A stretch of DNA of 62,247 nt, the filler included, from Choristocarpus tenellus KU-1152 (lineage: Eukaryota; Protista; Phaeophyceae): the NCBI GenBank assembly GCA_964200185.2. It is 10 parts of 10 records of this genome, joined end to end, with 100 filler letters (N's around TTAATTAATTAA, not from the genome) between each part and the next. Parts side by side here need not be neighbours in the genome. Positions count along the whole stretch, not along the records: positions 29,055 to 39,931 come from CAXNAD020002655.1; 9 more parts are not named here. One strand, written 5' to 3'. The notes under the pieces were generated by a model. The model searched no databases and was not told the origin of the DNA. It worked only from the letters and a program-made list of their open reading frames with translations. Position numbers and translations under genes: made by a program. Position 1 is the first letter of the stretch; each line of letters begins with the position of its first letter. Shown here piece after piece: positions 150 to 40,628 of this stretch.

Positions 150-1400
150 ACCATTCAAATGAGTTCCACTGTTGAGGTTGGAACTTTCCCGTTGGACAAA
201 CTGCACTATACGCCTCCTTCTTACAGGAAGAATTTGTGGCACAGGCAGTGCTTACGGTCTGTTATGAGGTCGAATGTATCACATTCTAAAGTGGAACTCA
301 GTAAAGGTAACCCCATTTCTGCTAGCAATCATGTTCACAGATGTCTCGTGAGTACTGCATCGGGTGAGCTGGAAGTAATTTTCAACCTCTGCCCTTCCTC
401 CTTTCTGTCGTAATAGTCGTCGCGAGGAAGATACATATTACCACTACTCTACTGTATAGGATTCCTCTTGGCATTTCCATCCTATGGACAAGAATTTGAG
501 CAAGAATCCTCGACAAAGGATTTCCGTCGCCTCACTCCGTCCATTGAAGTCGAAACCACTACATCGCTCGGGCGTACACCTTTCTAAGACCTACATGGAA
601 AACTTCACAGTGGATCCCGTAGGTTGTGGGAGCTGGGAGACAGGATTCTACATATGGAAGGGAGTTGGTTGGGGAAGCAATATCAACCGTGAGTGACAGG
701 TCGATTGTTCATTGATTGATCTTGAGTGACGTCGACGGGTTTGAATGTTTTGGGCAATGTGGGAATTGAGGAATGGGACATTGATTATACTTGTGAATTT
801 GATGAGCTTTGTATCGCATAGTGGTATCCTATGATCGGGTAGACGAACGCAAAGCAGGGAGTCTCTACATAGAAAATTGCCTTTGGCTCATGTGAAAGAG
901 TGCGAGTTGGCTTGGTGAAATCTCCTCTCTTGTCCACTTTATTCCTCGGTCTCACATCCTTGTGGATGAGTCCAACTTCTTTGCAGGAGCAGTTCATCTT
1001 TTTTACATTTTAACGTCGCAAAATAACCCTTCCTTGGCACTTACTAAATATAAGCAGAGGACCATTCACATGACCTCAAGCACAACCTCTCCTATGCTAC
1101 TCCTACGTGTATCATTCAGTATTGCTTTCTAGCTGGGTGAATGGTGCAGTTTGCTACGGCTTGAAAAACATAGCCATTATTGAGAAAGGACTAGTGGACA
1201 GTGTGACCTGTGAGGACAGGATTATTTCTGGAGGGTGGGCCACTAACAATACAAATCCATCTCATCACACGGCTGAATCGGAAGCTTCCACTCCTTCTAT
1301 GAAGTCTGTTGGTCTAAACTGTATCATCAAGCCAACATCACACTTGTGCATCTTCAGCACAGTCGATGTGAGCGACGAGTAGATTAGGAGTAATTATTTT
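150..1400 (-). mobile_element. Highly degenerate LTR-retrotransposon pol remnant (RNase H / integrase-like)
   Basis: Broken minus-strand peptides FIEGVEASDSAV..GFVLL and TFDLITD../ALPVP loosely resemble gypsy RNase H (F.xE.DAS..A.G.VL) and integrase starts; many stops and frameshifts. Confidence 0.3.
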
Positions 1401-2825
1401 CTTCTGTTGTTCGTTCCCTTGTTTGGTAGTTCACCCGTAGGATTTCTAGTGTGACCCAATAGCATTTCCGTGTCATCAGTTGGGAGTCACTATTATATAT
1501 ATATATATATATATGATGCAATTCCTATTTTATAGTCTTGCAGTTACTGCCTTCCCACCCCTCCACGTCGACGCCATGTACGTACAGTATGTATCATAGT
1601 TTTATTCCAGTTTTATCCTCACAAGCACTTGCACTGAAGGAATATACAGCTTTCCTGGAGGAGAAGGGAGCTCCTGCGCAGCTCAGGCATCAGACATCCA
1701 GGAAGGAATATTCTCAACGGCCCAATGATGAGAGAAGAAGTGTTGGGTGGGATCAACGTTCAAGACCTGGAAAGATAGAGGCTCGGGAGGTAAGATTGAT
1801 GTGAATCAGTACTTGGAGCATTTGTGAAGATTGCATCTGCATGCTGCATTTTGGTATTGACTACCATTTTATGGTTTGGCATTGTAATTGGTGTAAAGTC
1901 CCTCACTGTTTCTTATTGTACCTTTTCCCCTGTGATCCTATTTACATTGAACGGTGAATGAATTGTGTCTGCTGAGTTCCCATTCCATTTGGAAGCACAT
2001 TGAATAGTTGGGGATTATTTTGTCGCAATGCAGATATTTGGCAAAACTTGCGACAGTAGAACGTGAGGTCATTGGGAACATTTTCATCCTGATCCTGATC
2101 TTGGTATTGCAACTATCAGAAAATGCGGTTGTGTCTGTTTCTTTGTTAGCTGCACCCTACTGAGGAATTACCAAGATTTCACATTTTACTTGCATAAAAT
2201 ATGCTACATAACGCTCCCAGTATATTTAGATGGGATATGTAGCTCCAATCCACATGCCTGCAAGCTGACGATGAGGCCCAGAGATGGTTCCTGCAATGTA
2301 TCGATAGCCTGACAACCAATAAAAATGGGTGGTTACCAGGATATTGACAAAATATGCAGATATTCTCAAGCTGATTGTTTGTATGACTGCATCTCAGAGA
2401 CCAAGGGTGCGTAGGAAGAACTACGATTGGAATCTGGATGGGTCTATTTTTGAGAAGACGTAGTTACAACTGAAATGTGTTGCTTTATTCTCAAGTTGCA
2501 GGTTTTTCACTAAATTGACAGCGACCTTAACATATCCCTTTTGGGGCTGTCTGGTTGCATGCTTGCTGCTTGCGGTTGTTTGACCTTGAGAAGCAATTCC
2601 TTCGCTCATTGCCTGTAACAAGCCCCCTAGTGTGAACTAGGTACATGTGTTTCATGCGTAGCGCAGGCGATTTTCATAGTTTAAGAGAAAGGAATCATCA
2701 ACGACCTCTAACGTATTGTTGCAACATGTATTTGTTACCCTTGCATGGTGAGTCCAACAGTATAAAAAAGAATCAACTTTGAGTTGGTCTTTTACGGTCT
2801 TCAGTTTTCCGGTTTACCAAATCAC

Positions 2826-3430
2826 TTCTAAAGTGTGACCAAACTATACCCTTGTTTCTTTTGGGAGTGACCGTCTAAAAGTCGCACGATACAATCAGAT
2901 TCAGTTCACATCTAGTCTAATCAGATTATACACTTGTCTCTTCTGACGGTCTGGTTCATAGTCAACAAGCATGCATCTCTGGCTTGGCCTATGATGAAAA
3001 GGGTCCCCTGTTCTGATTTATCATTATCACCTCTAAATGGTATTAAAAAATGCCCTTGCTTCTTTTGGGAGTGTCCACCCAACAGTCACAGGATACAAAC
3101 TGAATCAGTTTCGCATTTGCCTAATAATCGGAGTATATTCTTGTCTCTTATGGGGGTCTGGTTCAAAAGTTGCGAAGCTATATCTCTGACTTGGCCTACA
3201 ATAGAAGGGTCCCCAGTTTCAATTTACTCCATTACCTCTAAACTGTGAAAAAAAAAAACTTGCTTTTATTGAGAGTAACTGTCCAACAGTCACTGGATAT
3301 ATAGTCCACATCTAACCTAATCAGAGTAGACTCTTGTCTCTTCTGGGGATGATCTGGTTCGAAAGTTGCACAGCATACACCTCCTACTCTGTAAACAACA
3401 GAAGGTTACCCAGTTCCGATCTTCCTATGT
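2826..3430. repeat. Diverged tandem repeat, about 205-bp unit x3
   Basis: Recurring blocks CTTGYTTCTTTTGGGAGTG, CTTGTCTCTT..GGTCTGGTTC and AGGGTCCCC at about 205-bp period. Confidence 0.8.
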
Positions 3431-3805
3431 CACACCTAACCTTCTGAGTGTACATTTGTTTCCCTTGGGCACCTAATCCATGAATTATAAAGCTACTTAA
3501 GGATCGGCCTGGTGTCTTTGGTCAATAAATATACTCAAGATTCCCACTCCATTCAACGCTAAGGAGATGTAAAACAATCGCCTATCAAACGGGTTGGACC
3601 TCAAGTTTGTCCTATGGTATTCCTCGTTCCGATTTTCCCATGTCACACCTGACCTTTTGAACACACTCATTTGGCCCTTGGGTGCCTAGTCCACGAGTTA
3701 TTAACCACAAGTTCAATTTGGGATTGGCCAGGTGTTTTTGTCAGTTAATAAATTCAAGGATCCCATGCCATTCATGGCAAAAGAGATGTGTGACAGTTGC
3801 CTACA
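3410..3805. repeat. Diverged tandem duplication, about 215-bp unit x2
   Basis: GTTCCGAT..CC.ATGTCACACCT.ACCTT and GGCC.GGTGT.TTT..CCATTCA..AGAGATGT each occur twice. Confidence 0.75.
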
Positions 3806-4304
3806 CCATGCCCCCCATTTTAAAGCATTGACAGGCCTTTAATGCTCTGAACAGTCAAATTAGCATGACCCAAAAAAGATAAGAAAAATGTAGAAATTGA
3901 TTAGAAAGTAAATAATAGGACATATGCTACCTCTGTGCCGTAAGTTTGTGCCGCGAGAACGGCGCCGAATCAGACGATAACTGCACAGAATGAAATCGGG
4001 TTGATAATCTCTGCTTTCAGAAAAGGTAGAGGTCGAGGATCATCATGTACAAACTCGAGGTGCTTCTAGCCGTCAAAGCAGAGGTCTTTTGGGGTGACTT
4101 TGAGGCCAGAACTGGGCACGTTGAGGGTCAGAGCGTCTGTATGACAACCTCCCCATCGACCCCCCCGCATAGTAAGTGTGCCCAAGTGTTCTTGAATACC
4201 CGGGTTGCGCTTGCAGAGCAGCACGCCCTCGCAATGGTCCCTGGTGAGCATAAACTGTCACGACACATTGGGCCGGCCCTCGCAGTGGAGTTTGGGGTGT
4301 GTGA

Positions 4305-4930
4305 GTTTGCTTTTGAATTAGCCCGTCGCAATCTGGGAGAACGGAACGCTAAGAGAATGACTAGCAATAAAACTCTTGTTTTCCCTGTGTTTCAAGTTGG
4401 AGCTAAAGTTTTGGTGCACCGTCCACATACTGACTGACCGTGACGGACTCAACCCAAAACTGATTCACCCCTGACGTGAACCTTTCACAGTGACTGCCAA
4501 GATTTCCCCTGTAGTTTACTGTGTTCGCAAACAAGGTGACATCAAATATATTTCTGTTCACTTACCCACTTGAAACCTTGCATTCCGAACACAAAACCAC
4601 CTGAACCTGATTTTATGAAACTCGTATTTTTTTTTCTTGGCCGTACTTTGCCCTTATCGGTTCTTGATGACTTAGAATCCAGTAACCATTGGTCCTTATG
4701 TTATTGAAGTCAATGTGGGAAACAAGTTTGGCTGTGGAACTCGTTCACCTATGAAAGCATAGAATATAGATTACACCTGAAAGGTTATGGTTGTGCTTCT
4801 GAGGTATTCTATCGTCCACGTGATTTGCTACAATGTGCAGAAATAATTTCTACATATCGGCAATAACATTGTCTGGATACACCTAATTCCAGCACAAAAC
4901 CTTCAGTTGTTACCAAATCTGATCCATGAA
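4305..4930 (+). mobile_element. Ty3/gypsy (chromovirus-type) remnant: integrase C-terminus plus chromodomain
   Basis: FELARRNL..FQVGAKVLVHRP..NPKLIHP*REPFTVTAKISPVVYCV..ISVHL (GPY/F-region) then EYRLHLKGYG..CAEIISTYR; stops and frameshifts. Confidence 0.8.
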
Positions 4931-28954: not shown

Positions 28955-29779
28955 NNNNNNNNNNNNNNNNNNNNNNNNNNNNNNNNNNNNNNNNNNNNTT
29001 AATTAATTAANNNNNNNNNNNNNNNNNNNNNNNNNNNNNNNNNNNNNNNNNNNNTGATTCACAGGGTGCATAGGCCTAATAAACATCCTATTACTAGCCT
29101 CGTACCTTCCACGCGTGACCCTTTAACGAAGTGGTCACCTCTACATCATCCTACGATAAGCCCTCACTGTTCGAGTTTCTTACCGTATGGATTGGGGCGA
29201 ACGATATCAGCAGCAGAAAACAACCCATTCACTCTATCACCGATCGATATAGACCTGATATCTGTCCCAGCTCTACATCTCAAGCGATATCCAACCTGCA
29301 ATCACTCTACAAGATTGTCTCGGGCACACTACCCCTACCCTGACCCAATATCTTTTATTTCTATCATGGACTCGATGGGATAACCATGTTTGTGATATAA
29401 ACCGCCCACTCTACTACTTGGCCCCGTCTACCCTTTAGACTGTCACTCCGCAGAGTCCTCGACCCTCTTTTGTTTTTGCTATACCAACCTATAAAGTACT
29501 AACACCTACTCCCATCTCTACCAGGACCACTACCGTCAGCATCGTCCCGATTCAACACTTATGCGTCTATCCTATTTCACTTCACCATAACATCGTCAGT
29601 TCTCCGTTATTTCTCTCTGGATTACCCCGGATATCTCCTTGCATTGTGTCTCAATCTGCCCACTTCACCACCCATCCATGTCCAATTCCTACCATACACC
29701 AATCTACATTTTTTTTTCAAATTCTTCATCCCCCGTACCTTGTGGGCCTTTTCCTACCATTTATATATCTGATTTCAAG

Positions 29780-30145
29780 CATTCCAGCCTTTCCCACAGG
29801 GCCTTTCTCGTTCAACAGTAGGAAAGGTTGCTCGGGTGTTGCCTTGTTCTATTCCGGGTAGAGATTGCTCGGAGGTTGTCTTGTTCTAGCCCTCCTCTTC
29901 CTTTACCACCAGTCCTAGGTTTTCTTTACATACTGACCATTCCTTCTTACCTTGTGCCTCCCCCTACCCCCCATTTCTTTAACTTCTCTCCTACCTCTTC
30001 TGCCTCCTACCCACTCAGTACTTAACTGTTGGTTCACCCCTTGACTACTTTTCTTTTTCCTTCACCTCTCCCTTCCCTCTACCACAATCCTACCAGAATT
30101 CTTCCCCCGCCCACAAAACTCAGATTACTTCATAAGATTTCCATA
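29780..30145 (+). mobile_element. Second copy of the 3' region of the DIRS-like element
   Basis: CCAGAATTCTTCC..CCCACAAAACTCAGATTACTTCATA and CCACTCAGTACT are reverse complements of sequence in 43660-44000. Confidence 0.65.
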
Positions 30146-30285
30146 TCATGCTCTTGGATTGTTCAAAATAATACTAATTATGATATTTTGATGTTGATGT
30201 GTTGTTTTGTATGACGCGTGTTTGTAAAATCACCACACATTTCACATCCTCCAAACTACATGATTTATACACAAGGAAACCTGCT

Positions 30286-30335
30286 TAGGGTCAAAAACGG
30301 ACGCCGCCCCCTCCCCCCCCCAGATACACTGACCC
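30286..30335 (-). mobile_element. MITE family B-type short-spacer end (solo)
   Basis: AAAACGGAC-19 bp-AGATACACTGACCC. Confidence 0.75.
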
Positions 30336-32931
30336 TAGTCCTTCTTTGTCCTAGATTCGCGAAAAATGCCTTCCAAGTTTTTGACTATCTCACCACCTAC
30401 CATCTATTATGTACAAGAAGACAGGAAATTGACTATCACACGCACAACAGCAAATGATAAATGATATAACTCCTAAGCCAGCAGCAGGAACAACTGTAAA
30501 ATAAATTCTTTTCAAAATACTCACAATTTCTTCCCTACACAACTTTCTATATCATGACTTACAACCCGCAATTCCTACATTATTATGTTGTTGCCATCAT
30601 TGCCATTCACCAATAATTAGCAGTGTTTCATACTCCCAGTTGTAGACTAAAACAACACATACCACGTACAGCACTACTTGAAGAGGAAAACTGTAGCACA
30701 ATTCCACTCAGTTGCAGTGCACAAACACGATGGATAATAACAATGATCAATTGCAAAGATTGAAAATTGTGACCTAACAATAGACGCACAAAGACACGTA
30801 CGACAACATGTCAGAAGAAACTTATTTTGAAAGAAAAAAAGCTGAGCTTGCTTTTGAAGCGTGGGGCTTGAGGACCCTCCAAACAGGTGAAGCGGAATAC
30901 GGAGATGGAGCTTGAAGCACTGGGTCTTTGTGCAACAATTCATTACAATTAATTACTTTACTCCTAGTACATGGAACAGCCGATTTCAAAAATTGAGGAT
31001 GGGCTTGACCCAAAATTCACTGGGACAAAGTGTCGATAATATGTTTTTTTTGTAATATATTAGTGGATCAAAGCAGTTCATGTGTACAAATGAAAAGTTT
31101 AGTAAACTGTGATACGTGCAATCTCTCCTGTTACGCATAATACAAAAGTACACTGAAAAGAGGTCATGGATCCTCCTTTCTAATATAATCTTTCAGAACT
31201 CTGATGAGTACATTGTTGTTTCAAGTTAAGCATTTTCGACATTCACAAAATTTGTTCGACGTAGAACCGAGGTTATGGTATGAACACACAAAAACTGGTT
31301 ATTTTAGTAGTTGGGACTGGATGAAATTTTCGTTTTTCACAACCATTTTCTGTGCACAAATATATATCCATCCTCTCAAAAAAATCCTATGACTACGTAC
31401 GGTTCGAAATTACTGGTTGCGCTCGAAGGTACATGAGGCATGCATCTCTTTCAGCTGACGAAAAAAGTAGAGCATTTTTGCTCTTTCAAATCTCTTCAAA
31501 CATCTACAGAGATAGAGAGAGAGTAGGGTAGGTGCGGTAGATTATAGTAACTCATTCATACACCCACTGTTTCATATCTTTGCTTCTTCTCTGCACTACC
31601 TTTCCACCACATGTCTAGGAGGATTTGGTAGCTGTAGCAACAGAATTTCTGCTTAGGTCGATCTACTAGTTGACTTGAAACAAAAATAGAACATCGATTG
31701 TTCTTGTAACAGAGTTGATCCCAGGTTCTAAAACGGCTTCACCTTTCCAGTCATTTATTTACACTTCGTATCAACACAGAAACGGATGTCACTTGGGCAT
31801 TATGACTAATGCAACTACCCAACAGTGCATGTCTGAATGTGCTGCTGACTAAACCTAAACCCTTCCAAAAATGCTACGTGAATCTGAAATGGAGGAAAAC
31901 CTGTTGGTGCTTTCGTACTCTATAGTAGCAGTACAATATGATTATATTAGAGCAAGTGGTTTCAGTTAAATGCATGAATGCAATACTAAACAACTCAAGT
32001 AAAGATAAAGCAGCATCAAAGAGAAGTAAAAGAAGATTAGAGTATTTAACGAGAAGAATAAACAGCGGCAGGAAGTAATTGGAACACAACACGAACATGG
32101 AACTTGAAGGAGATTACGATGCGAACAGAACAAATAAGGAGAAACGAAGAGATAAACAGAAACATTAAATGACAACAGGAGGATAGAGGCGTGGTAGCAC
32201 TATTCTTTTTTTCCCATCGATTTTCACGAATATCATGCCGAACAATAATATAGAGCAACCTCTCTTGGATCCACACCTTAGACGTTCACACTTCTGCTCT
32301 TTGTTAAAGATCTCTCTCATCTTGAACAAATTGTGGATGTACTCTATGAAAACCATCATAGGGCGAAGCAGTCACGATCACTCATGTATTTCTACATAGT
32401 TCCCATAGCTTCAGCAAAAGAAGTCGATCTATGCCTTTCATCTTTCAACAAAAACTGAAAACTCAACTATCACCAAAAAAGAGAAGATGGCAAGTAACGT
32501 CCACACACAAAGCAAACACAAGAACATTAAACCCTTCACCAACCAACCCTCTTTCCTGATATATACAACTAGCTCAACAAAACTATGCGAAAGATCAATC
32601 AGTATTGTTAACAGATCATTATCCCACTGGAGAATCTATCATTACTCGTGATTTTCAAGTCAGATCCTGGAATACATGGGTGCTACAAACAGTTCTCTCC
32701 ACCCTACTGGAAAATGAAACAAAACATATGTGTAGACAGACACAACACCTCACATACTCTTTCAAATATTTCACACTCTTCAATCTTGTCTCTGTAAGAG
32801 CTTTTGACCTTCTACCAGTTAAGTACCATTCGACAAAAAAAACTTGAATCGTGTTCATGAGGTGCTGAGTTCTTTCTAATACCAAATTAAACGAACCAGT
32901 ACAGACACGAAAGTTACATTCAAATAGTCAT

Positions 32932-35900
32932 TTACAAGTTTGTCTTGTTATCTAGGGCGTTGCAAACGACCACTTCAAGGTTCTCCCCGTCGTTTACTCT
33001 CAAGTTTCGCACAAGAGGGCTGCCGCTACACTGTTTGAAAACTATTGCTTTCTTGTGGTCCATACGACGTTTTCCCCAAATCTGAACCATTCGATGCCCT
33101 TCCTCTTGCACCTGTTGTGTTACCCATACAACAACCGTACTTTTAATGCTTAATATGCGCTCTTCACTATTACCACCTTCAATTTCACAGCTGAACACAC
33201 GAGTTCCTGAATCTGTCCAATTTCCTTCCACATTTACCTCACCACCTTGAAAAACACTTAAGGCTGCCCCAAAACGAGTTGGTTTGAATTTCGACTCAGA
33301 GCTATCCCTATATAAGACAGTGACGTCTTGCTTCTGACCATCTTTCTCAAAGCCATTATTGACAAAAAGGAACCCACATTTTCTGCTCTTATGATCCAAT
33401 TCCTCAGTGTCAACAATCGCAACATTATCGTTCTCGTTGATAGGCCTCGCAACACTGAATTTAGTGAAGTGAGGTACCAACACTTGAAGAAAAAAGGTCT
33501 TCCCCACTTGGACAACCTCTGACGCACATGGACCCCACTTCTTACCACCCTCTTCTTGGACCAACACTCCAAATTCCTCCCTCAGGTACTTCTTGTAAGC
33601 TTCCTCTTTATCCACAATACCATCTTCATCATCTGATCCAGCATTCATTCTCTCTTCATCTCCAACAGGAAACCGCAGCCGAAGTGGTGAGGAAAATTCC
33701 AACCCTTTGCTTGCTAAACATGTCACCACAGGATGCAGCAAGTAACGTTTCCCGTCCAAAGTAGCTGTGCTTGATGACATGGTCACAAGTCCAGGGATCC
33801 CATCCCTCATTGAGGTAAACAGTTCGAAGTCAGGAGACCCCAAACTCTCATCATCTGGTCCTAGTTGCCATGCCACCACTTTCCCAGTGACACCTGCCAT
33901 TGTGTAAGGATAGTGCGAGAACTGAAGACATGCATGACTAAATACTGCCATAATTGTATTTCACATCATATTCTACCACATACTACTATCAATCATGGCA
34001 CCAGCATTTAACATCAAACATTGGGTAGTATCTAGGGGGTGGGGGTAGCCTCGACTGTCCATTTTGGATCAACATTTTCATGTCATGATTTTTGCGTGAT
34101 TTGGTGGCATACGTCAGATGAATAGTGTAAGTGCACTTTTCCTGGTATGGTCCACATGGGCACCCTGGTGTAGAACTCCCCCCCCGCCAGATACTTTGGG
34201 TCGGAAGAACAAACCTGTCAGTCGTGACTTCGGCACAAAGTCCTCCAATGATGTCATTGCTGGATATTTCTCCCGCTTCATTTTCCCCATTGGGTAAGAG
34301 ACCAATTCTGCATGTTACAGGCAACCCATAGAGAGGAAACCACTGTCAAATACATTATTTTATGTAGCAGCAGATATGTTTCTTTCTGAAGTGATGTAGA
34401 ATAAGCAGAATCTGCAAAGTACATATTGAAAAAGAACAAATAGAGAGAGGAAAAAAACAAACCTGTTCTCATTCCTGAACCTTTCCCCACATCTCCATCC
34501 TTTGTCTTCAGAACATCCCAGTCATCTGTAGTTACGCTCATCCTTGATCCAGTCATCATATACGTCAAAGTATCTGTGGGAGGGGGGGGGGTGTCGGCGT
34601 CCGTTTTTCACTCTTTTTTCCATTTTCACTTTTTTGGTGTGATTTGGTCGCACATGTCGGATTTGAAATGTCAGCAAAAAAAGAGTTGATTGAAACAGAC
34701 GCCCCCTCACAAACCACCCCCTCCCAGATACTTTGACCCTTATCCATAGCTGGACCTTGCAAATGTCGGTGGAAATAATAGAGAATATGATAGACAAGCG
34801 AAAACCGCAAAATACCATGTACAAATCACAGATATATGGCCTACCCAGAGCAGGAACAGCATGGTGATATTAAGGGTGTAACAAAAAATGAAGAGAGAGC
34901 AAGAACACGAACCTGTTTCCAGTCCTGAGACCTTCCCCACATCTCCATCCTTTGTCTTCAGAACATCCCAGTCATCTGTAGCTTGACGCATCCTTGATCC
35001 CGCATACTTATCCATAGCAGAGCCTTACAAATGTCAGTGGGAATGAGAGAAAAAATAATTGAAAATGAGAACCGCAATATATGGCCTACCCAGAGTAGGG
35101 GTAGCATGGTCAAGATACTTCCAGAGGGTGGACTCAGCAATCCCTGATTTTGTTCTTTGAACATCCAAACTTTGTTGTACCAGTTGAACATTTCCATTTC
35201 ATACCTTACACACACCAACAACAAGCTACAAATGAACGGATAAATACTTATTGTGTAACCAAATATTGAACAAAGTGAAAAAAATCCCATCTGTACATTA
35301 GGTACTTCATCACAGTTTAGTGCAAATTATCAGTCTCCAAACTGTAAAGGACAGCACAAATAGGTTGACAATGACAGGCGTGACACTATGCTGATGACAA
35401 CAACGTACCACAATACAGACAGAACAGATATGAGATGTTTGAAAGTATCAACTTTACACACGAAACCACGACATAGATACAACCAAACAACAAAATATAT
35501 GCTTCTCTTTGCTTAACATCAAAACAAGTCAAACTTTCTATGTTCAAGGTTATTAACACCACCCAACCTACTCCTTACCGTCCAGCAAGACCTTGCTAAG
35601 GGCCCTAACCTGTTCAGCAGTAGGAAGTACACCTGTCCAATAAAAACGAACGTGCGTTTCAGATTATTTTTATTGACATCAGAACAATAGTAGTATTCAC
35701 ATTATAATTGCACCAAGTGTATACAACCCCATCCTCAAAGTCAACAAACTACATACAACATTGACACGTCCGAAGTAATCTTACCTTTGCACTTAACATT
35801 AACAACACAATCATACACAAAATGAGCAACTAAAACACACATCACTAACGATTCACAACAAACCACCTACACCACTTCACATCAATGCACCTCACCCGTG

Positions 35901-38900
35901 TGAGAATGTACATTCATAGCTTACAGATAAATTAAATATTTAATCAACAATAAAAAGTAATCTTCAACCTACAGGCCCCTCATCTAATCCCTTCTAATCT
36001 TGTACATCAAAACATCTACCTCAACAGTACACATACAATTAACAAAAAAATGATCTTTGCTTTTATACACCACACAACAAACAACACAAATTCTAAATAC
36101 ACCAGACAGCGCTACATACCTAACCCTAACCCTAACTCACAATTCACATCCATACAGCGAGTACACACACCCTCTATCACCGACAGGTCAATATCATCCA
36201 AACATCAGTTCCCAAAGAATACCAAATCTGATATTTAAACAGTACGCACACAAATCACACAACAAATTGAGTACGTCAAATATATACAAGCAGCTATGTC
36301 AAACCATCCACCTTGCATCTACATACAAACAAACGTACCACTCAGTTGATTGGAGTGGAGATCGAGGACTCTCAGTTCGGACAGTCCACCAAGAGATGGT
36401 GGTATGTCTCCTGTTTGGGGAGAAATATAAGGCACAAACATATTACACATAGGAAGTATGCTTAGCTTTGAACTCGACAACACAATCATACACAAAGTGA
36501 ACGACAACAACAACACACATCACTAACAATTCACAACAAACCACCCACACCGCTTCACATCAATGCACCCCACCTTTGCGAGATACGGAAATAATTTAAT
36601 CTCAAATTGATTGAACTAAGGACATTTTCTTCTTCATTGCTTATTATCTTATTACTTTTGCACTTCTCTTACTTTTGACTACTTTGCAATTCAATAAGTG
36701 GGAAATTGGGGGGGAATGTGAAGAGGAAATAAGAGAGTGTAAAATATGTAGATGTGGGGTCTGACAATAATAATTAGTATCCATATCTCTGCGATTGTGG
36801 CAATACCCAAATGTATTGTGAAAATGCACTATTATGAAGGGACCCTCAAAAAAGACTTGTATGCTAAGTAGCCAGGTCAAAAATGCCACTATTTAGAAAT
36901 AATTATATACATATTCAAGACCACCATAGTTAACTGATATCCGACAAAATACTTGCGTATATTAGTTATTTTTTATTATTAACTACCATTTTTCCTCTCA
37001 TATCAGTTCAGGTCAATAAATTGAAACAAACTCAACAGTCCATGTTGAGAAGCTCTACAACAGTTTTTGTAATGAGTTGGACAATCAAAAATAAAAATGG
37101 ACATCAACAGAAACAACATGCTCCCAAACCAGAGAGGGAGGTAGGCAAGATTGAGGGGGAGGGGGGGGGGATTGTGGGGGTGTTTATTAANNNNNNNNNN
37201 GGGGGGGGTGGGGAGGGGGGAGGGGGGGGGGTGGGGAGTGGGGGGGGGGGGGGTTGGGGTGATTGTGGGGGTGTTTATTAATTTATTATATTGCTGGCTA
37301 AATGGGTTTGTGTTCTTAACTAAAAACATCTTTGCTTTCTGTTATTATTATTCTATTATTACAATATAAATTGGTGGTGTAATAAGCAAACAGGTAAGAC
37401 TGTAAGATGTGCGTAAAACTGACTTCTCGACATCAGTCTTCAACAAACAAAATAAATAAAACTGACAACAATTCCCCTTGTATTTATTTTACTGTAAGCA
37501 CATAGATATTATGCTGGTTCATCGAAGGATCAGGATTGAGAGTATGGAGGACCCGATTAAATTTAATTCGAACAAAGATATACAAACTTCCAGTGCCATA
37601 CGGATGCCAAAAGGACAAACACAAGGTTCCTGTGTATTTCAAGAGCACACTATTCTTTCGACAAACAGATTGATTAGACTATGGAAGGTAGAGTGCAATA
37701 CCAGAAGGGCATGCAATGTTGAAGCATTACATGCTACAAAGATGTCTATGTGCAATGACCGTATTGTGTTAGCAAGACTGTGCTAGAGCAGGTTTTAGAA
37801 GCTATCATTATCATACATATTCGTGTGTCGACAAGATATTTTGATGCAAACAATAGGGTAGTTGTTGGACACTCTTTCACCAAGTGCCCAAACTACCCAA
37901 ACTACCCAAAACAAAGTACCGTATGAGTATATTGAAAGTCGAGGGCACTGACACCTACCAGTCAGTGTCTTCAATAGCATTGATCGCAGTTACCATGTCA
38001 ATCTTCGGTAGTGAGGAATACTCCTAAATGCAGTTTCAAAAGCTAGTCAGAGTATAACATTCATAACATATTTAGGAGAACATACCATACTGGCATTTAC
38101 TATACTTCTATCAGGAAGTATAATCTACTTCATATAATTTAATAGCACATATTTCATGGTTCACAACAGACCTTCCCCCACTAATCCCAAGTGATTATTT
38201 AGCGCACCCGAATCATTATCTCAATTATTTATCCTGCCTTATCTCAAAAGACCTAGGATCTACCACCCACAACTTTGCCAGCTAAGAAGCGTTCCGGATC
38301 ACCCACAAAGTAGAAACTGAGACGCTAGCGGGAAGAGTAATGAGAGGAAAAAAAAGAAAAGAAAGAGTAAAAGAGTAATGAGAGGGAAAAAAAGAAAAGA
38401 AAGAAGAAAAGAGTAATGAGAGTAAAGGAAGATCGAGGATGGATCAATTATGAGCACCTCTCCACCATGGATGTGTTGGCCCAGACTAGAGACTCTACCA
38501 TGTACTACATTTTGTGTTACATTTGCCATGACCACTCAACACACACACACACAATTTGTTCACTATCTCATACAAAACCCATCACCCTATCATCATCACA
38601 AAGAGGACGACATTAAAAAACGGTCACAACTCCTATCCCATGAGAGGGAGTTGTATGGTAGGTATGATCCGGTCCAGACAAAGACACAACCGCTGACAAC
38701 GTCTACCCCCTATTTTCTCAGATGTCAGCACAAGGGAGATGAGGGTGGGGGAAGAAATGTGGTGGGTGATCTTCATCCTGGAAGAGCCAGTTGCAAAGCA
38801 CAGCTTAAAGTAACTCCGATATTTACAAGTTGTCAACTCATGCACTTACCCTTAAGGTTGTTGTTCCGTAGATCGAGTTCAACCACACGTCCTTCCGAGT

Positions 38901-39033
38901 TGACCTTCACGCCATATCGTACACTTAAATCATCTGTCTTGCTTTCCCACCCTTGGTTGTGACGCCACGACGTTCCACCCGTGGAACGAAAGAGGGTATC
39001 CAAGATATTTTCGTCTAGATCGCGTCCTTCCAT
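32932..39033 (-). CDS. LRR / ZU5-like autoproteolysis-motif protein, about 496 aa; exons 39033-38850, 36410-36339, 35632-35579, 34975-34913, 34525-34463, 34307-34215, 33893-32932
   Basis: All introns GT-AG and phase 1; total 1491 nt in frame. N-cap LFRSTGGTSW..W..GVKVNSEGRVVELDLRNNNLKG; 72-nt LRR exon GDIPPSLGGLSELRVLDLHSNQLS; last exon has ZU5-like LLHPVVTC...GLEFSSPLRLRFP and VPHFTKF. Inclusion of the small middle exons is inferred. Confidence 0.75.
34020..34202 (+). mobile_element. MITE family C in the last intron of the LRR-ZU5 gene
   Basis: Degenerate left end AGTATCT..GTCCATTTTGG; right end CCACATGGGC-27 bp-AGATACTTTGGGTC. Confidence 0.88.
34440..35115. repeat. Tandem duplication of a 63-nt exon plus its intron
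   Basis: 34463-34525 (DDWDVLKTKDGDVGKGSGMRT) and 34913-34975 (DDWDVLKTKDGDVGKVSGLET) with duplicated flanking intron. Confidence 0.92.
34562..34739 (+). mobile_element. MITE family B, full length, in an intron of the LRR-ZU5 gene
   Basis: (AC)GTCAAAGTATCT...AGATACTTTGACCC; flanks ATAT / TTAT; the paralogous empty site CATAC-TTAT-CCATAGC is at about 35004-35018. Confidence 0.92.
35780..36575. repeat. Direct intronic repeat of about 115 bp (35780-35897 and 36460-36575) bracketing the 72-nt LRR exon
   Basis: ACAACACAATCATACACAAA..ACACACATCACTAAC.ATTCACAACAAACCACC.ACACC.CTTCACATCAATGCACC occurs twice. Confidence 0.9.
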
Positions 39034-40628
39034 CTGTGAAGGTACTGCTTCACGGCATTCGAAGAAGGAAGTCGTTAAATAGGAGAAGCGATTGAATATT
39101 CCCCATATGGAGATTCCTATTTTCCGAACATAACAGAGTAGTACCAATACCAGTACTCTCCCACCTCTATCCCGGAAACGTTCTCTTCTTACTTACAAGA
39201 CTTCAAAAGACTGGTGCGCTTAATTATCACTCACCCACTCCATCCATTATTGCCTTCAAAATTAGTTTAATTAGTTTGGGACAACATCATCTACACGGAA
39301 ACCGAACTTTTCTTGGCACAATAGTTTCTCTGATACACCCCACCACCCATGTTTCAACGTACGAGTTTTTATTTTTTCGCAAACAAGAGACTACAAATAC
39401 AAATATATGGTGTTTGAACTGACTCTCTCTGTCATACAAATGATCAAATCAAGGAGGAAGAGCAGAAGGAGAATTCTCAACTGAAAAATTAGACTCTCCA
39501 AATTCTTTTACTTGCTGACAAGAAATTGTGACGTTTTCAGAGATGGGAGATGGAAACAGATGCAAGGTGGATAAAGAGGGAATATGAAGGAATTGGTGTA
39601 CATATTTGAGTAAAACCACATTAATGAGTTGAAGGATGTTAAATTAAAAAAAGTTAAACCACCTGATGCCAATGTCCTCATGAATCCTATGAATATCCTC
39701 TCAAACCACCATTCTTCTGCATCCGGCATTGCAAGCTAGCAATGATTTTAAATCAACAAAAGTGAAAGGAATGTAAAAAGCGCAAAGAGATGGTATGTGA
39801 GACAAGGCAGGAGCAGTGCAGGAGCAGTGCAGCATTACAAGTTAGTTGACTGTACCTTACCAAAAAAATTCCAAAGTAGTCAAGAAAATATGCAGCCACG
39901 GAGCAATCCTCCTGTAACCTAAGCAACACAGNNNNNNNNNNNNNNNNNNNNNNNNNNNNNNNNNNNNNNNNNNNNTTAATTAATTAANNNNNNNNNNNNN
40001 NNNNNNNNNNNNNNNNNNNNNNNNNNNNNNNCACGGTATAACGGTATATGGCATACGAGCAATACGGTATAATAACAGACAAACATGCTTTCGACAATAG
40101 AGGATAGAGGAATAAGAAAATAGGAATGTGCAAAATAATAATAATAATCCAGAATTCGTGAGCAAAACAAGATGTCAGAGGGCATAATAATAAAATACAG
40201 ACTTAAGGGGTAGACGGAGTACGATTTTAAATATAATACTTAAATATACTTCAATATACAGTGATTTTGTTGTAGGTTATTTCTACCAACCTACATGATA
40301 TATAAGTTGATCCTTGTACAAGCATTTTGAAAGGTCGACCTCAGTTGAGAGACGATATGTCCTCCATAGTTGATCCCGTACTATATACTACAACAGTAAA
40401 AGATGTGAGCGAGAATTCGAAGCCTCCAGCTGAAGAGGTTCATGGGACTTCTCGTTCTGAGTTTGCTGTGAAGAACGAGGATGCGGCAGGTCAGCTAACA
40501 CTCACGCAGACAATTTCCAGGGTTAGCAACCCAAGTATGTTAACAAAGTTGAAATTATCCACTCACTAGACCGAACCAGTCAGCTCTGCACCCCCCTGTT
40601 TCACTGGCACCTCATTTATATACTCCCA

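Follow-up and report, generated by a model that had tools for sequence, protein, structure and literature searches.

A brown-algal LRR-ZU5 gene family with a predicted self-cleavage site: a candidate two-part sensor in Choristocarpus tenellus

The brown alga Choristocarpus tenellus carries a member of an LRR-ZU5 gene family that is real and expressed, and that represents a PIDD1/FIIND-type module in a new setting. The gene lies in a window of 62,247 nucleotides (the whole stretch of joined genomic parts), within which the analysis was confined to positions 29055-39931, and its product is read here, with a probability of about 0.58, as a cytosolic self-cleaving two-part sensor engaged in a host-pathogen arms race.

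Gene structure and expression

The gene runs on the minus strand as seven GT-AG exons, every one in phase 1, that together encode 528 aa (Table 1). This agrees with the in-frame seven-exon chain of the original prediction, with RNA-like joints from exon 2 onward and matching homologous loci that are free of gaps. The expected number of LRRs, about two, stood only in part: the LRR exon is real, but the locus holds a single complete 24-aa LRR exon plus a partial repeat that closes exon 1. The N-cap exon and the 72-nt phase-1 LRR exon place the protein among the brown-algal exon-shuffled LRR proteins, and exon 3 is called C-cap-like from its resemblance by eye and its position, the cap profile having given no score. 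The last exon contains the anticipated 320-codon open frame (33893-32932, minus), with the LLHPVVTC motif at exon aa 51-58 and LVPHFTKFSV at 138-147, and its T143 corresponds to position 352 of the 528-aa protein.

Table 1. Features of the LRR-ZU5 gene, in window coordinates
Feature	Position	Strand	Basis
Exon 1: start codon, brown-algal LRR N-cap, first partial LRR	38850..39033	-	same N-terminal exon in homologues
Assembly gap at poly-G tract, inside intron 1	37191..37200	.	flanks overlap by 21 nt
Exon 2: one complete 24-aa LRR, 72 nt, phase 1-1	36339..36410	-	29 bits with family LRR profile
Exon 3: LRR C-cap-like	35579..35632	-	occupies place of homologues' PVPS..QL cap exon; joints on both sides
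Linker exon, optional (in or skipped), duplicate of linker 34463..34573	34913..35023	-	
Linker exon	34463..34573	-	spliced joints
Linker exon	34215..34307	-	spliced joints
Last exon, 320 residues plus stop: ZU5-like domain, then C-terminal beta-sandwich	32932..33893	-	open frame; joint at depth 1217
ZU5-like domain, exon aa 1-150, post-cut strand aa 144-150 included	33442..33891	-	structure matches
H141-F142-T143, predicted self-cleavage site F↓T	33463..33471	-	register and conservation
Ig/FN3-like beta-sandwich and terminal helix	32935..33441	-	diversifying; without death fold, enzyme or membrane helix

Evidence for splicing comes from X3, a public run that behaves as RNA. With contigs of the runs placed on the locus at 90% likeness, X3 depth is ~500-4400 in exon bins versus 5-250 in most repeat-free intron bins, and X3 contains joints with CT..AC ends that are absent in DNA-like runs. 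These RNA-like contigs join the LRR exon to the C-cap exon (36339/35632, depth 932), the C-cap exon to the first linker exon (35579/35023, depth 932) or directly to the second (35579/34573, depth 298), the second linker exon to the third (34463/34307, depths 1018 and 298), and the third to the last exon (34215/33893). Because both joints leaving 35579 are seen, the first linker exon is optional, and the unbroken run of joints links the LRR exon and the 32932-33893 ZU5 exon in one gene rather than two, as in the homologues. Among the X3 matches listed, neither the exon 1/exon 2 joint nor the joint 34913/34573 appears; exon 1 is expressed in X3, but at a read depth common to 6-7 contigs. The main transcript differs from the window in a few letters, which match a third version present in the DNA runs (five sites differing from the window in 380 nt), so the splice support applies to the gene studied or to an allele or copy almost identical to it. 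At 33518-33897 and 34230-34578 the DNA runs contain two or more versions of the locus, and one DNA-run version shares five letters with L001, a C. tenellus contig with 92% identity across 3.6 kb of coding and non-coding DNA, and the remainder with the window, a mixture that suggests several recent copies or recombination.

The assembly gap lies inside intron 1, and the reading frame is therefore not set by it. The final 21 letters of its left flank are found again at 37261-37281, and a DNA-run contig aligns from exactly 37261 onward, its preceding 57 letters being unplaced. The gap probably represents overlapping contig ends with little or nothing missing, and continuity across it is likely; no contig bridging 37191-37200 is found among the matches listed. 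Two homologous loci without N (L002 and L005) show the same succession of N-cap, LRR exons, C-cap and ZU5 exon.

Intron 1 also holds an AG...GT-bounded stretch (37962-38024, minus) that faintly resembles a decayed LRR exon, contains a stop and gives no score with the family LRR profile. Intronic tandem duplications flank the LRR exon (35802-35905 and 36477-36583) and are found at the linker exons (34739-35110), and are likely a trace of exon gain and loss. Copies of a MITE-like, G/C-ended short inverted-repeat element, which the runs contain in very large numbers, sit among the linker exons and downstream (34178-34202, 34582-34740 and 30287-30319), and a telomere-like short CCCTAA run, common to many other contigs, lies in intron 2 (36119-36138). 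The strongly skewed, C-rich stretch at 29055-30250, which lacks a long ORF, is perhaps a transposon remnant.

[quoted passage not shown]

Structure prediction supports the ZU5-like fold proposed for the last exon. The spliced model was used exon by exon in searches, and structure models were made from the last exon rather than the joined protein. In the AlphaFold model, exon aa 1-150 (pLDDT about 70-94 per block) form a beta-sandwich whose final strand follows the cut loop, as in the ZU5 superfamily, and the best structural matches are ZU5, GAIN and FIIND domains, with ankyrin ZU5 domains at the top. PIDD1 is the first match in an Atlas structure search, though with a TM of only 0.41, and the model contains a single ZU5, not two. 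Pfam ZU5 (PF00791) gives no match for the protein or for 45 close relatives, and three distant members reach 16-20 bits against a cut-off of 21; the family is unannotated because Pfam misses the domain.

Self-cleavage between F142 and T143 is likely. Seven solved chains of self-cut proteins (human and rat NLRP1, GPR56, GPR97, GPR110, GPR126 and latrophilin-3) align to a range of the model that ends exactly at F142, which places T143 at the nucleophile position and bears out the predicted register of HF↓T with known cut sites. The last aligned residue is 1212 in NLRP1 (nucleophile S1213) and 382 in GPR56 (nucleophile T383), and the GPR97, GPR110, GPR126 and latrophilin-3 chains presumably end at their cut. 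As in self-cleaving domains, a hydrophobic residue and then a nucleophile precede the last strand, with a His nearby; in NLRP1 the strand that follows the cut remains within the ZU5 fold.

The survey of paralogues yielded 57 proteins that reach the site, with the motif HFC in 47, HFT in 9 and YFT in 1. What is conserved is thus HF (56/57) and a nucleophile (57/57), whereas the Thr of the predicted HFT motif is often Cys. In a 46-member alignment H and F are invariant, and the following residue is C (42) or T (4). This residue changes yet is always a nucleophile, with Ala, Val and Gly in 0/57, and it is precisely Ser, Thr and Cys that can initiate an acyl shift (PMC3210808). Of 319 columns, a single further one varies while being limited to S/T/C, and at a second, downstream HF motif the next position is V, L, M, I or A. 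The Thr and Cys codons, ACT and TGC, lie two base changes apart, and the tree, in which long branches join at the base, needs two T/C switches, in either direction. P0048, the sole member with Tyr for the conserved His (YFT), provides a natural test of the role of His. The Cys nucleophile of most members might also allow the N half to be passed on to another molecule through the thioester.

Family range, the C-terminal piece and selection

A word search recovered 4 relatives, a profile made from these recovered 46 proteins, and an exhaustive search of 1.84 billion representatives returned 32 matches only. The named homologues are restricted to brown algae (Choristocarpus, Ectocarpus, Scytosiphon, Hapterophycus, Pylaiella and Nemacystus), with several paralogues per species, and no relative turned up when viral and prokaryotic contigs were scanned by pattern. 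LRRs are joined to the ZU5-like domain in six NCBI gene models and in one from the large search, and the number of LRR exons ranges from 1 (the gene studied) to about 9. A distant branch (P0071, P0059, P0061, P0065 and P0074) has the ZU5-like module and HF[C/T] site with no LRR seen; P0071 (Nemacystus decipiens) carries RanBP2-type zinc fingers in place of LRRs, P0059 (L008:2684-4450) contains internal repeats, with an SH2-encoding ORF upstream in L008, and P0074 is located in L007. In Ectocarpus sp. 6, L005:10001-20110 holds seven LRR-like exons, three of which are used by the annotated model; the others may be alternatively spliced or kept as spares, as is the case in ROCO genes. The suggestion that the family is undescribed held in the literature searched, outside which most subscription papers lie, and where no paper combines ZU5 with brown algae. 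The portions seen of the literature pairing ZU5 with a stramenopile contain no such family, and ZU5 is not mentioned in a survey of Ectocarpus LRR proteins (PMC3341825).

From T143 to the stop the protein comprises 177 residues, close to the beta-rich tail of about 175 aa that had been proposed, and these form a beta-sandwich plus helix in the model. Folded alone, the C-terminal piece matched only generic Ig/FN3-like sandwiches, and no enzyme domain was found in it. As predicted, it has no death-fold domain, the protein stopping after one helix and the homologues ending at about the same place. Neither a signal peptide nor a membrane helix is present in the predicted protein.

Relative to the L001 copy, the C-terminal piece has a dN/dS of about 3 (p 0.017), indicating diversification, whereas the ZU5 domain is conserved (dN/dS 0.46). 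In the same comparison dN after the cut site exceeds the non-coding rate, so relaxed selection alone is insufficient; in older Ectocarpus pairs both halves are under purifying selection. Diversification of the C-terminal piece is no less compatible with a recognition or contested surface than with a conserved output domain. The piece may itself bind a pathogen molecule that keeps changing, be attacked by inhibitors from the pathogen, or make pairing specific to each paralogue; the released effector of the original prediction is one such option.

Relation to known systems, proposed mechanism and alternatives

The algal protein would function like a PIDD1/FIIND-type self-cleaving module, yet stands outside those families. 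PIDD1 (LRR-ZU5-ZU5-UPA-death domain), which cuts at S446 and S588 (PMC7308375), shares with it N-terminal LRRs before a ZU5 with an HF-nucleophile site. In contrast to PIDD1, the algal protein has one ZU5 rather than two, Thr/Cys rather than Ser, no death domain, plant-type GxIP LRRs encoded one per 72-nt exon, and no significant sequence similarity, and the PIDD1-like layout is probably a convergent assembly. Compared with the FIIND (ZU5-UPA) of NLRP1/CARD8, it lacks both NACHT and CARD, its motif is HF[T/C] whereas theirs is SF↓S with a distant His, and its post-ZU5 sandwich, at the place of the UPA that directly follows ZU5 in FIIND, matches only generic Ig/FN3-like folds; no NACHT NTPase was found in the gene studied or its full-length homologues. 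The predicted PIDD/FIIND likeness therefore holds for the fold, site register and LRRs, but not for the number of ZU5 domains, the death fold or NACHT. Unlike the GAIN/GPS of adhesion GPCRs, the algal domain is followed by a soluble sandwich and not 7TM, and has no signal peptide; Nup98 is absent among the structural matches listed. The brown-algal LRR-ROCO, LRR-kinase and NB-ARC-TPR candidate receptors (PMC3341825) have the same N-cap, also encode one LRR per exon, and likewise vary in exon number and bear signs of diversifying selection. In contrast to LRR-ROCO and LRR-kinase, the output here is ZU5 plus beta-sandwich, with selection found on the C-terminal domain, and no ROC-COR or kinase domain occurs in the protein or the relatives searched. 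ZU5 autopeptidases are already known in animals and bacteria, and in bacterial polymorphic-toxin conflict systems the superfamily acts as a releasing autopeptidase (PMC3482391); compared with these, the algal protein lacks an RHS or toxin domain.

The proposed protein would be a cytosolic chain of N-cap, exon-encoded LRR(s), C-cap, variable linker, ZU5 and beta-sandwich. Folding of ZU5 would strain the loop at H-F-T, and the Thr hydroxyl (a Cys thiol in most relatives) would attack the F142 carbonyl to give a (thio)ester that is then hydrolysed. The cut would be constitutive, and by analogy with NLRP1, CARD8 and GAIN the halves would be held together because strand 144-150 belongs to the ZU5 sandwich; known ZU5/FIIND fragments remain bound after the cut. 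This would produce an armed two-part sensor with the LRR and alternatively spliced linker as its input side. If the LRR/linker half is bound, clipped or degraded, the 177-aa C-terminal piece may, again by analogy, be freed or exposed; its surface would be under arms-race pressure from a pathogen or partner. A role in defence or immunity is slightly favoured, while release of the C-terminal piece as a switch or effector is a tentative proposal drawn from related systems. A bolder reading, with less than even odds, is that brown algae independently built a PIDD1/NLRP1-like tripwire from their own exon-shuffled LRRs and a ZU5, mostly with a Cys nucleophile, that triggers hypersensitive death via a new non-death-fold output.

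Self-cleavage might instead serve development, cell-wall or stress signalling, or maturation (as in Nup98 and adhesion GPCRs), to which the evidence for cleavage applies equally. Good expression in one culture run, purifying selection in the older Ectocarpus pairs and the relatives without LRRs fit such roles, but the dN/dS above 1 after the cut site, and a lineage-restricted expansion with variable LRR exon number that is typical of conflict genes, make them unlikely. Less probable again is a non-cleaving scaffold of the ankyrin/UNC5B kind, in which HF[C/T] would be structural only, as the top ranking of ankyrin ZU5 and the general conservation of the motif region would allow; the T/C switch by two base changes, never to Ala, Val or Gly, the near-uniqueness of such an S/T/C-limited column and the exact register with known cut sites argue against it. 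It seems improbable that, within a functional family, this locus is a copy that has shrunk and is decaying, its high dN due to relaxed selection or assembly error: only one full LRR is left and the main transcript carries third-version letters, but the frames are open, splicing is strong and in-frame, purifying selection acts on ZU5, and dN beyond the cut site is above the non-coding rate. A self-cleaving sensor in a host-pathogen arms race is thus the preferred reading.

Brown algae, C. tenellus included, resist oomycetes by hypersensitive cell death, but are without clear plant or animal immune receptors, and only the ROCO and NB-ARC families have been speculated to act as such (PMC12396294). 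The LRR-ZU5 family is a third candidate immune receptor family in brown algae, with a predicted built-in switch open to simple testing, and combines the fold and predicted cut-site chemistry of the self-cutting PIDD1/NLRP1 without a cell-death domain. If true, this would signify that the coupling of ZU5 self-cleavage to LRRs also arose outside animals, using Thr and Cys as natural nucleophiles, and would bear on the evolution of self-cleaving sensors and on disease resistance in farmed seaweeds.
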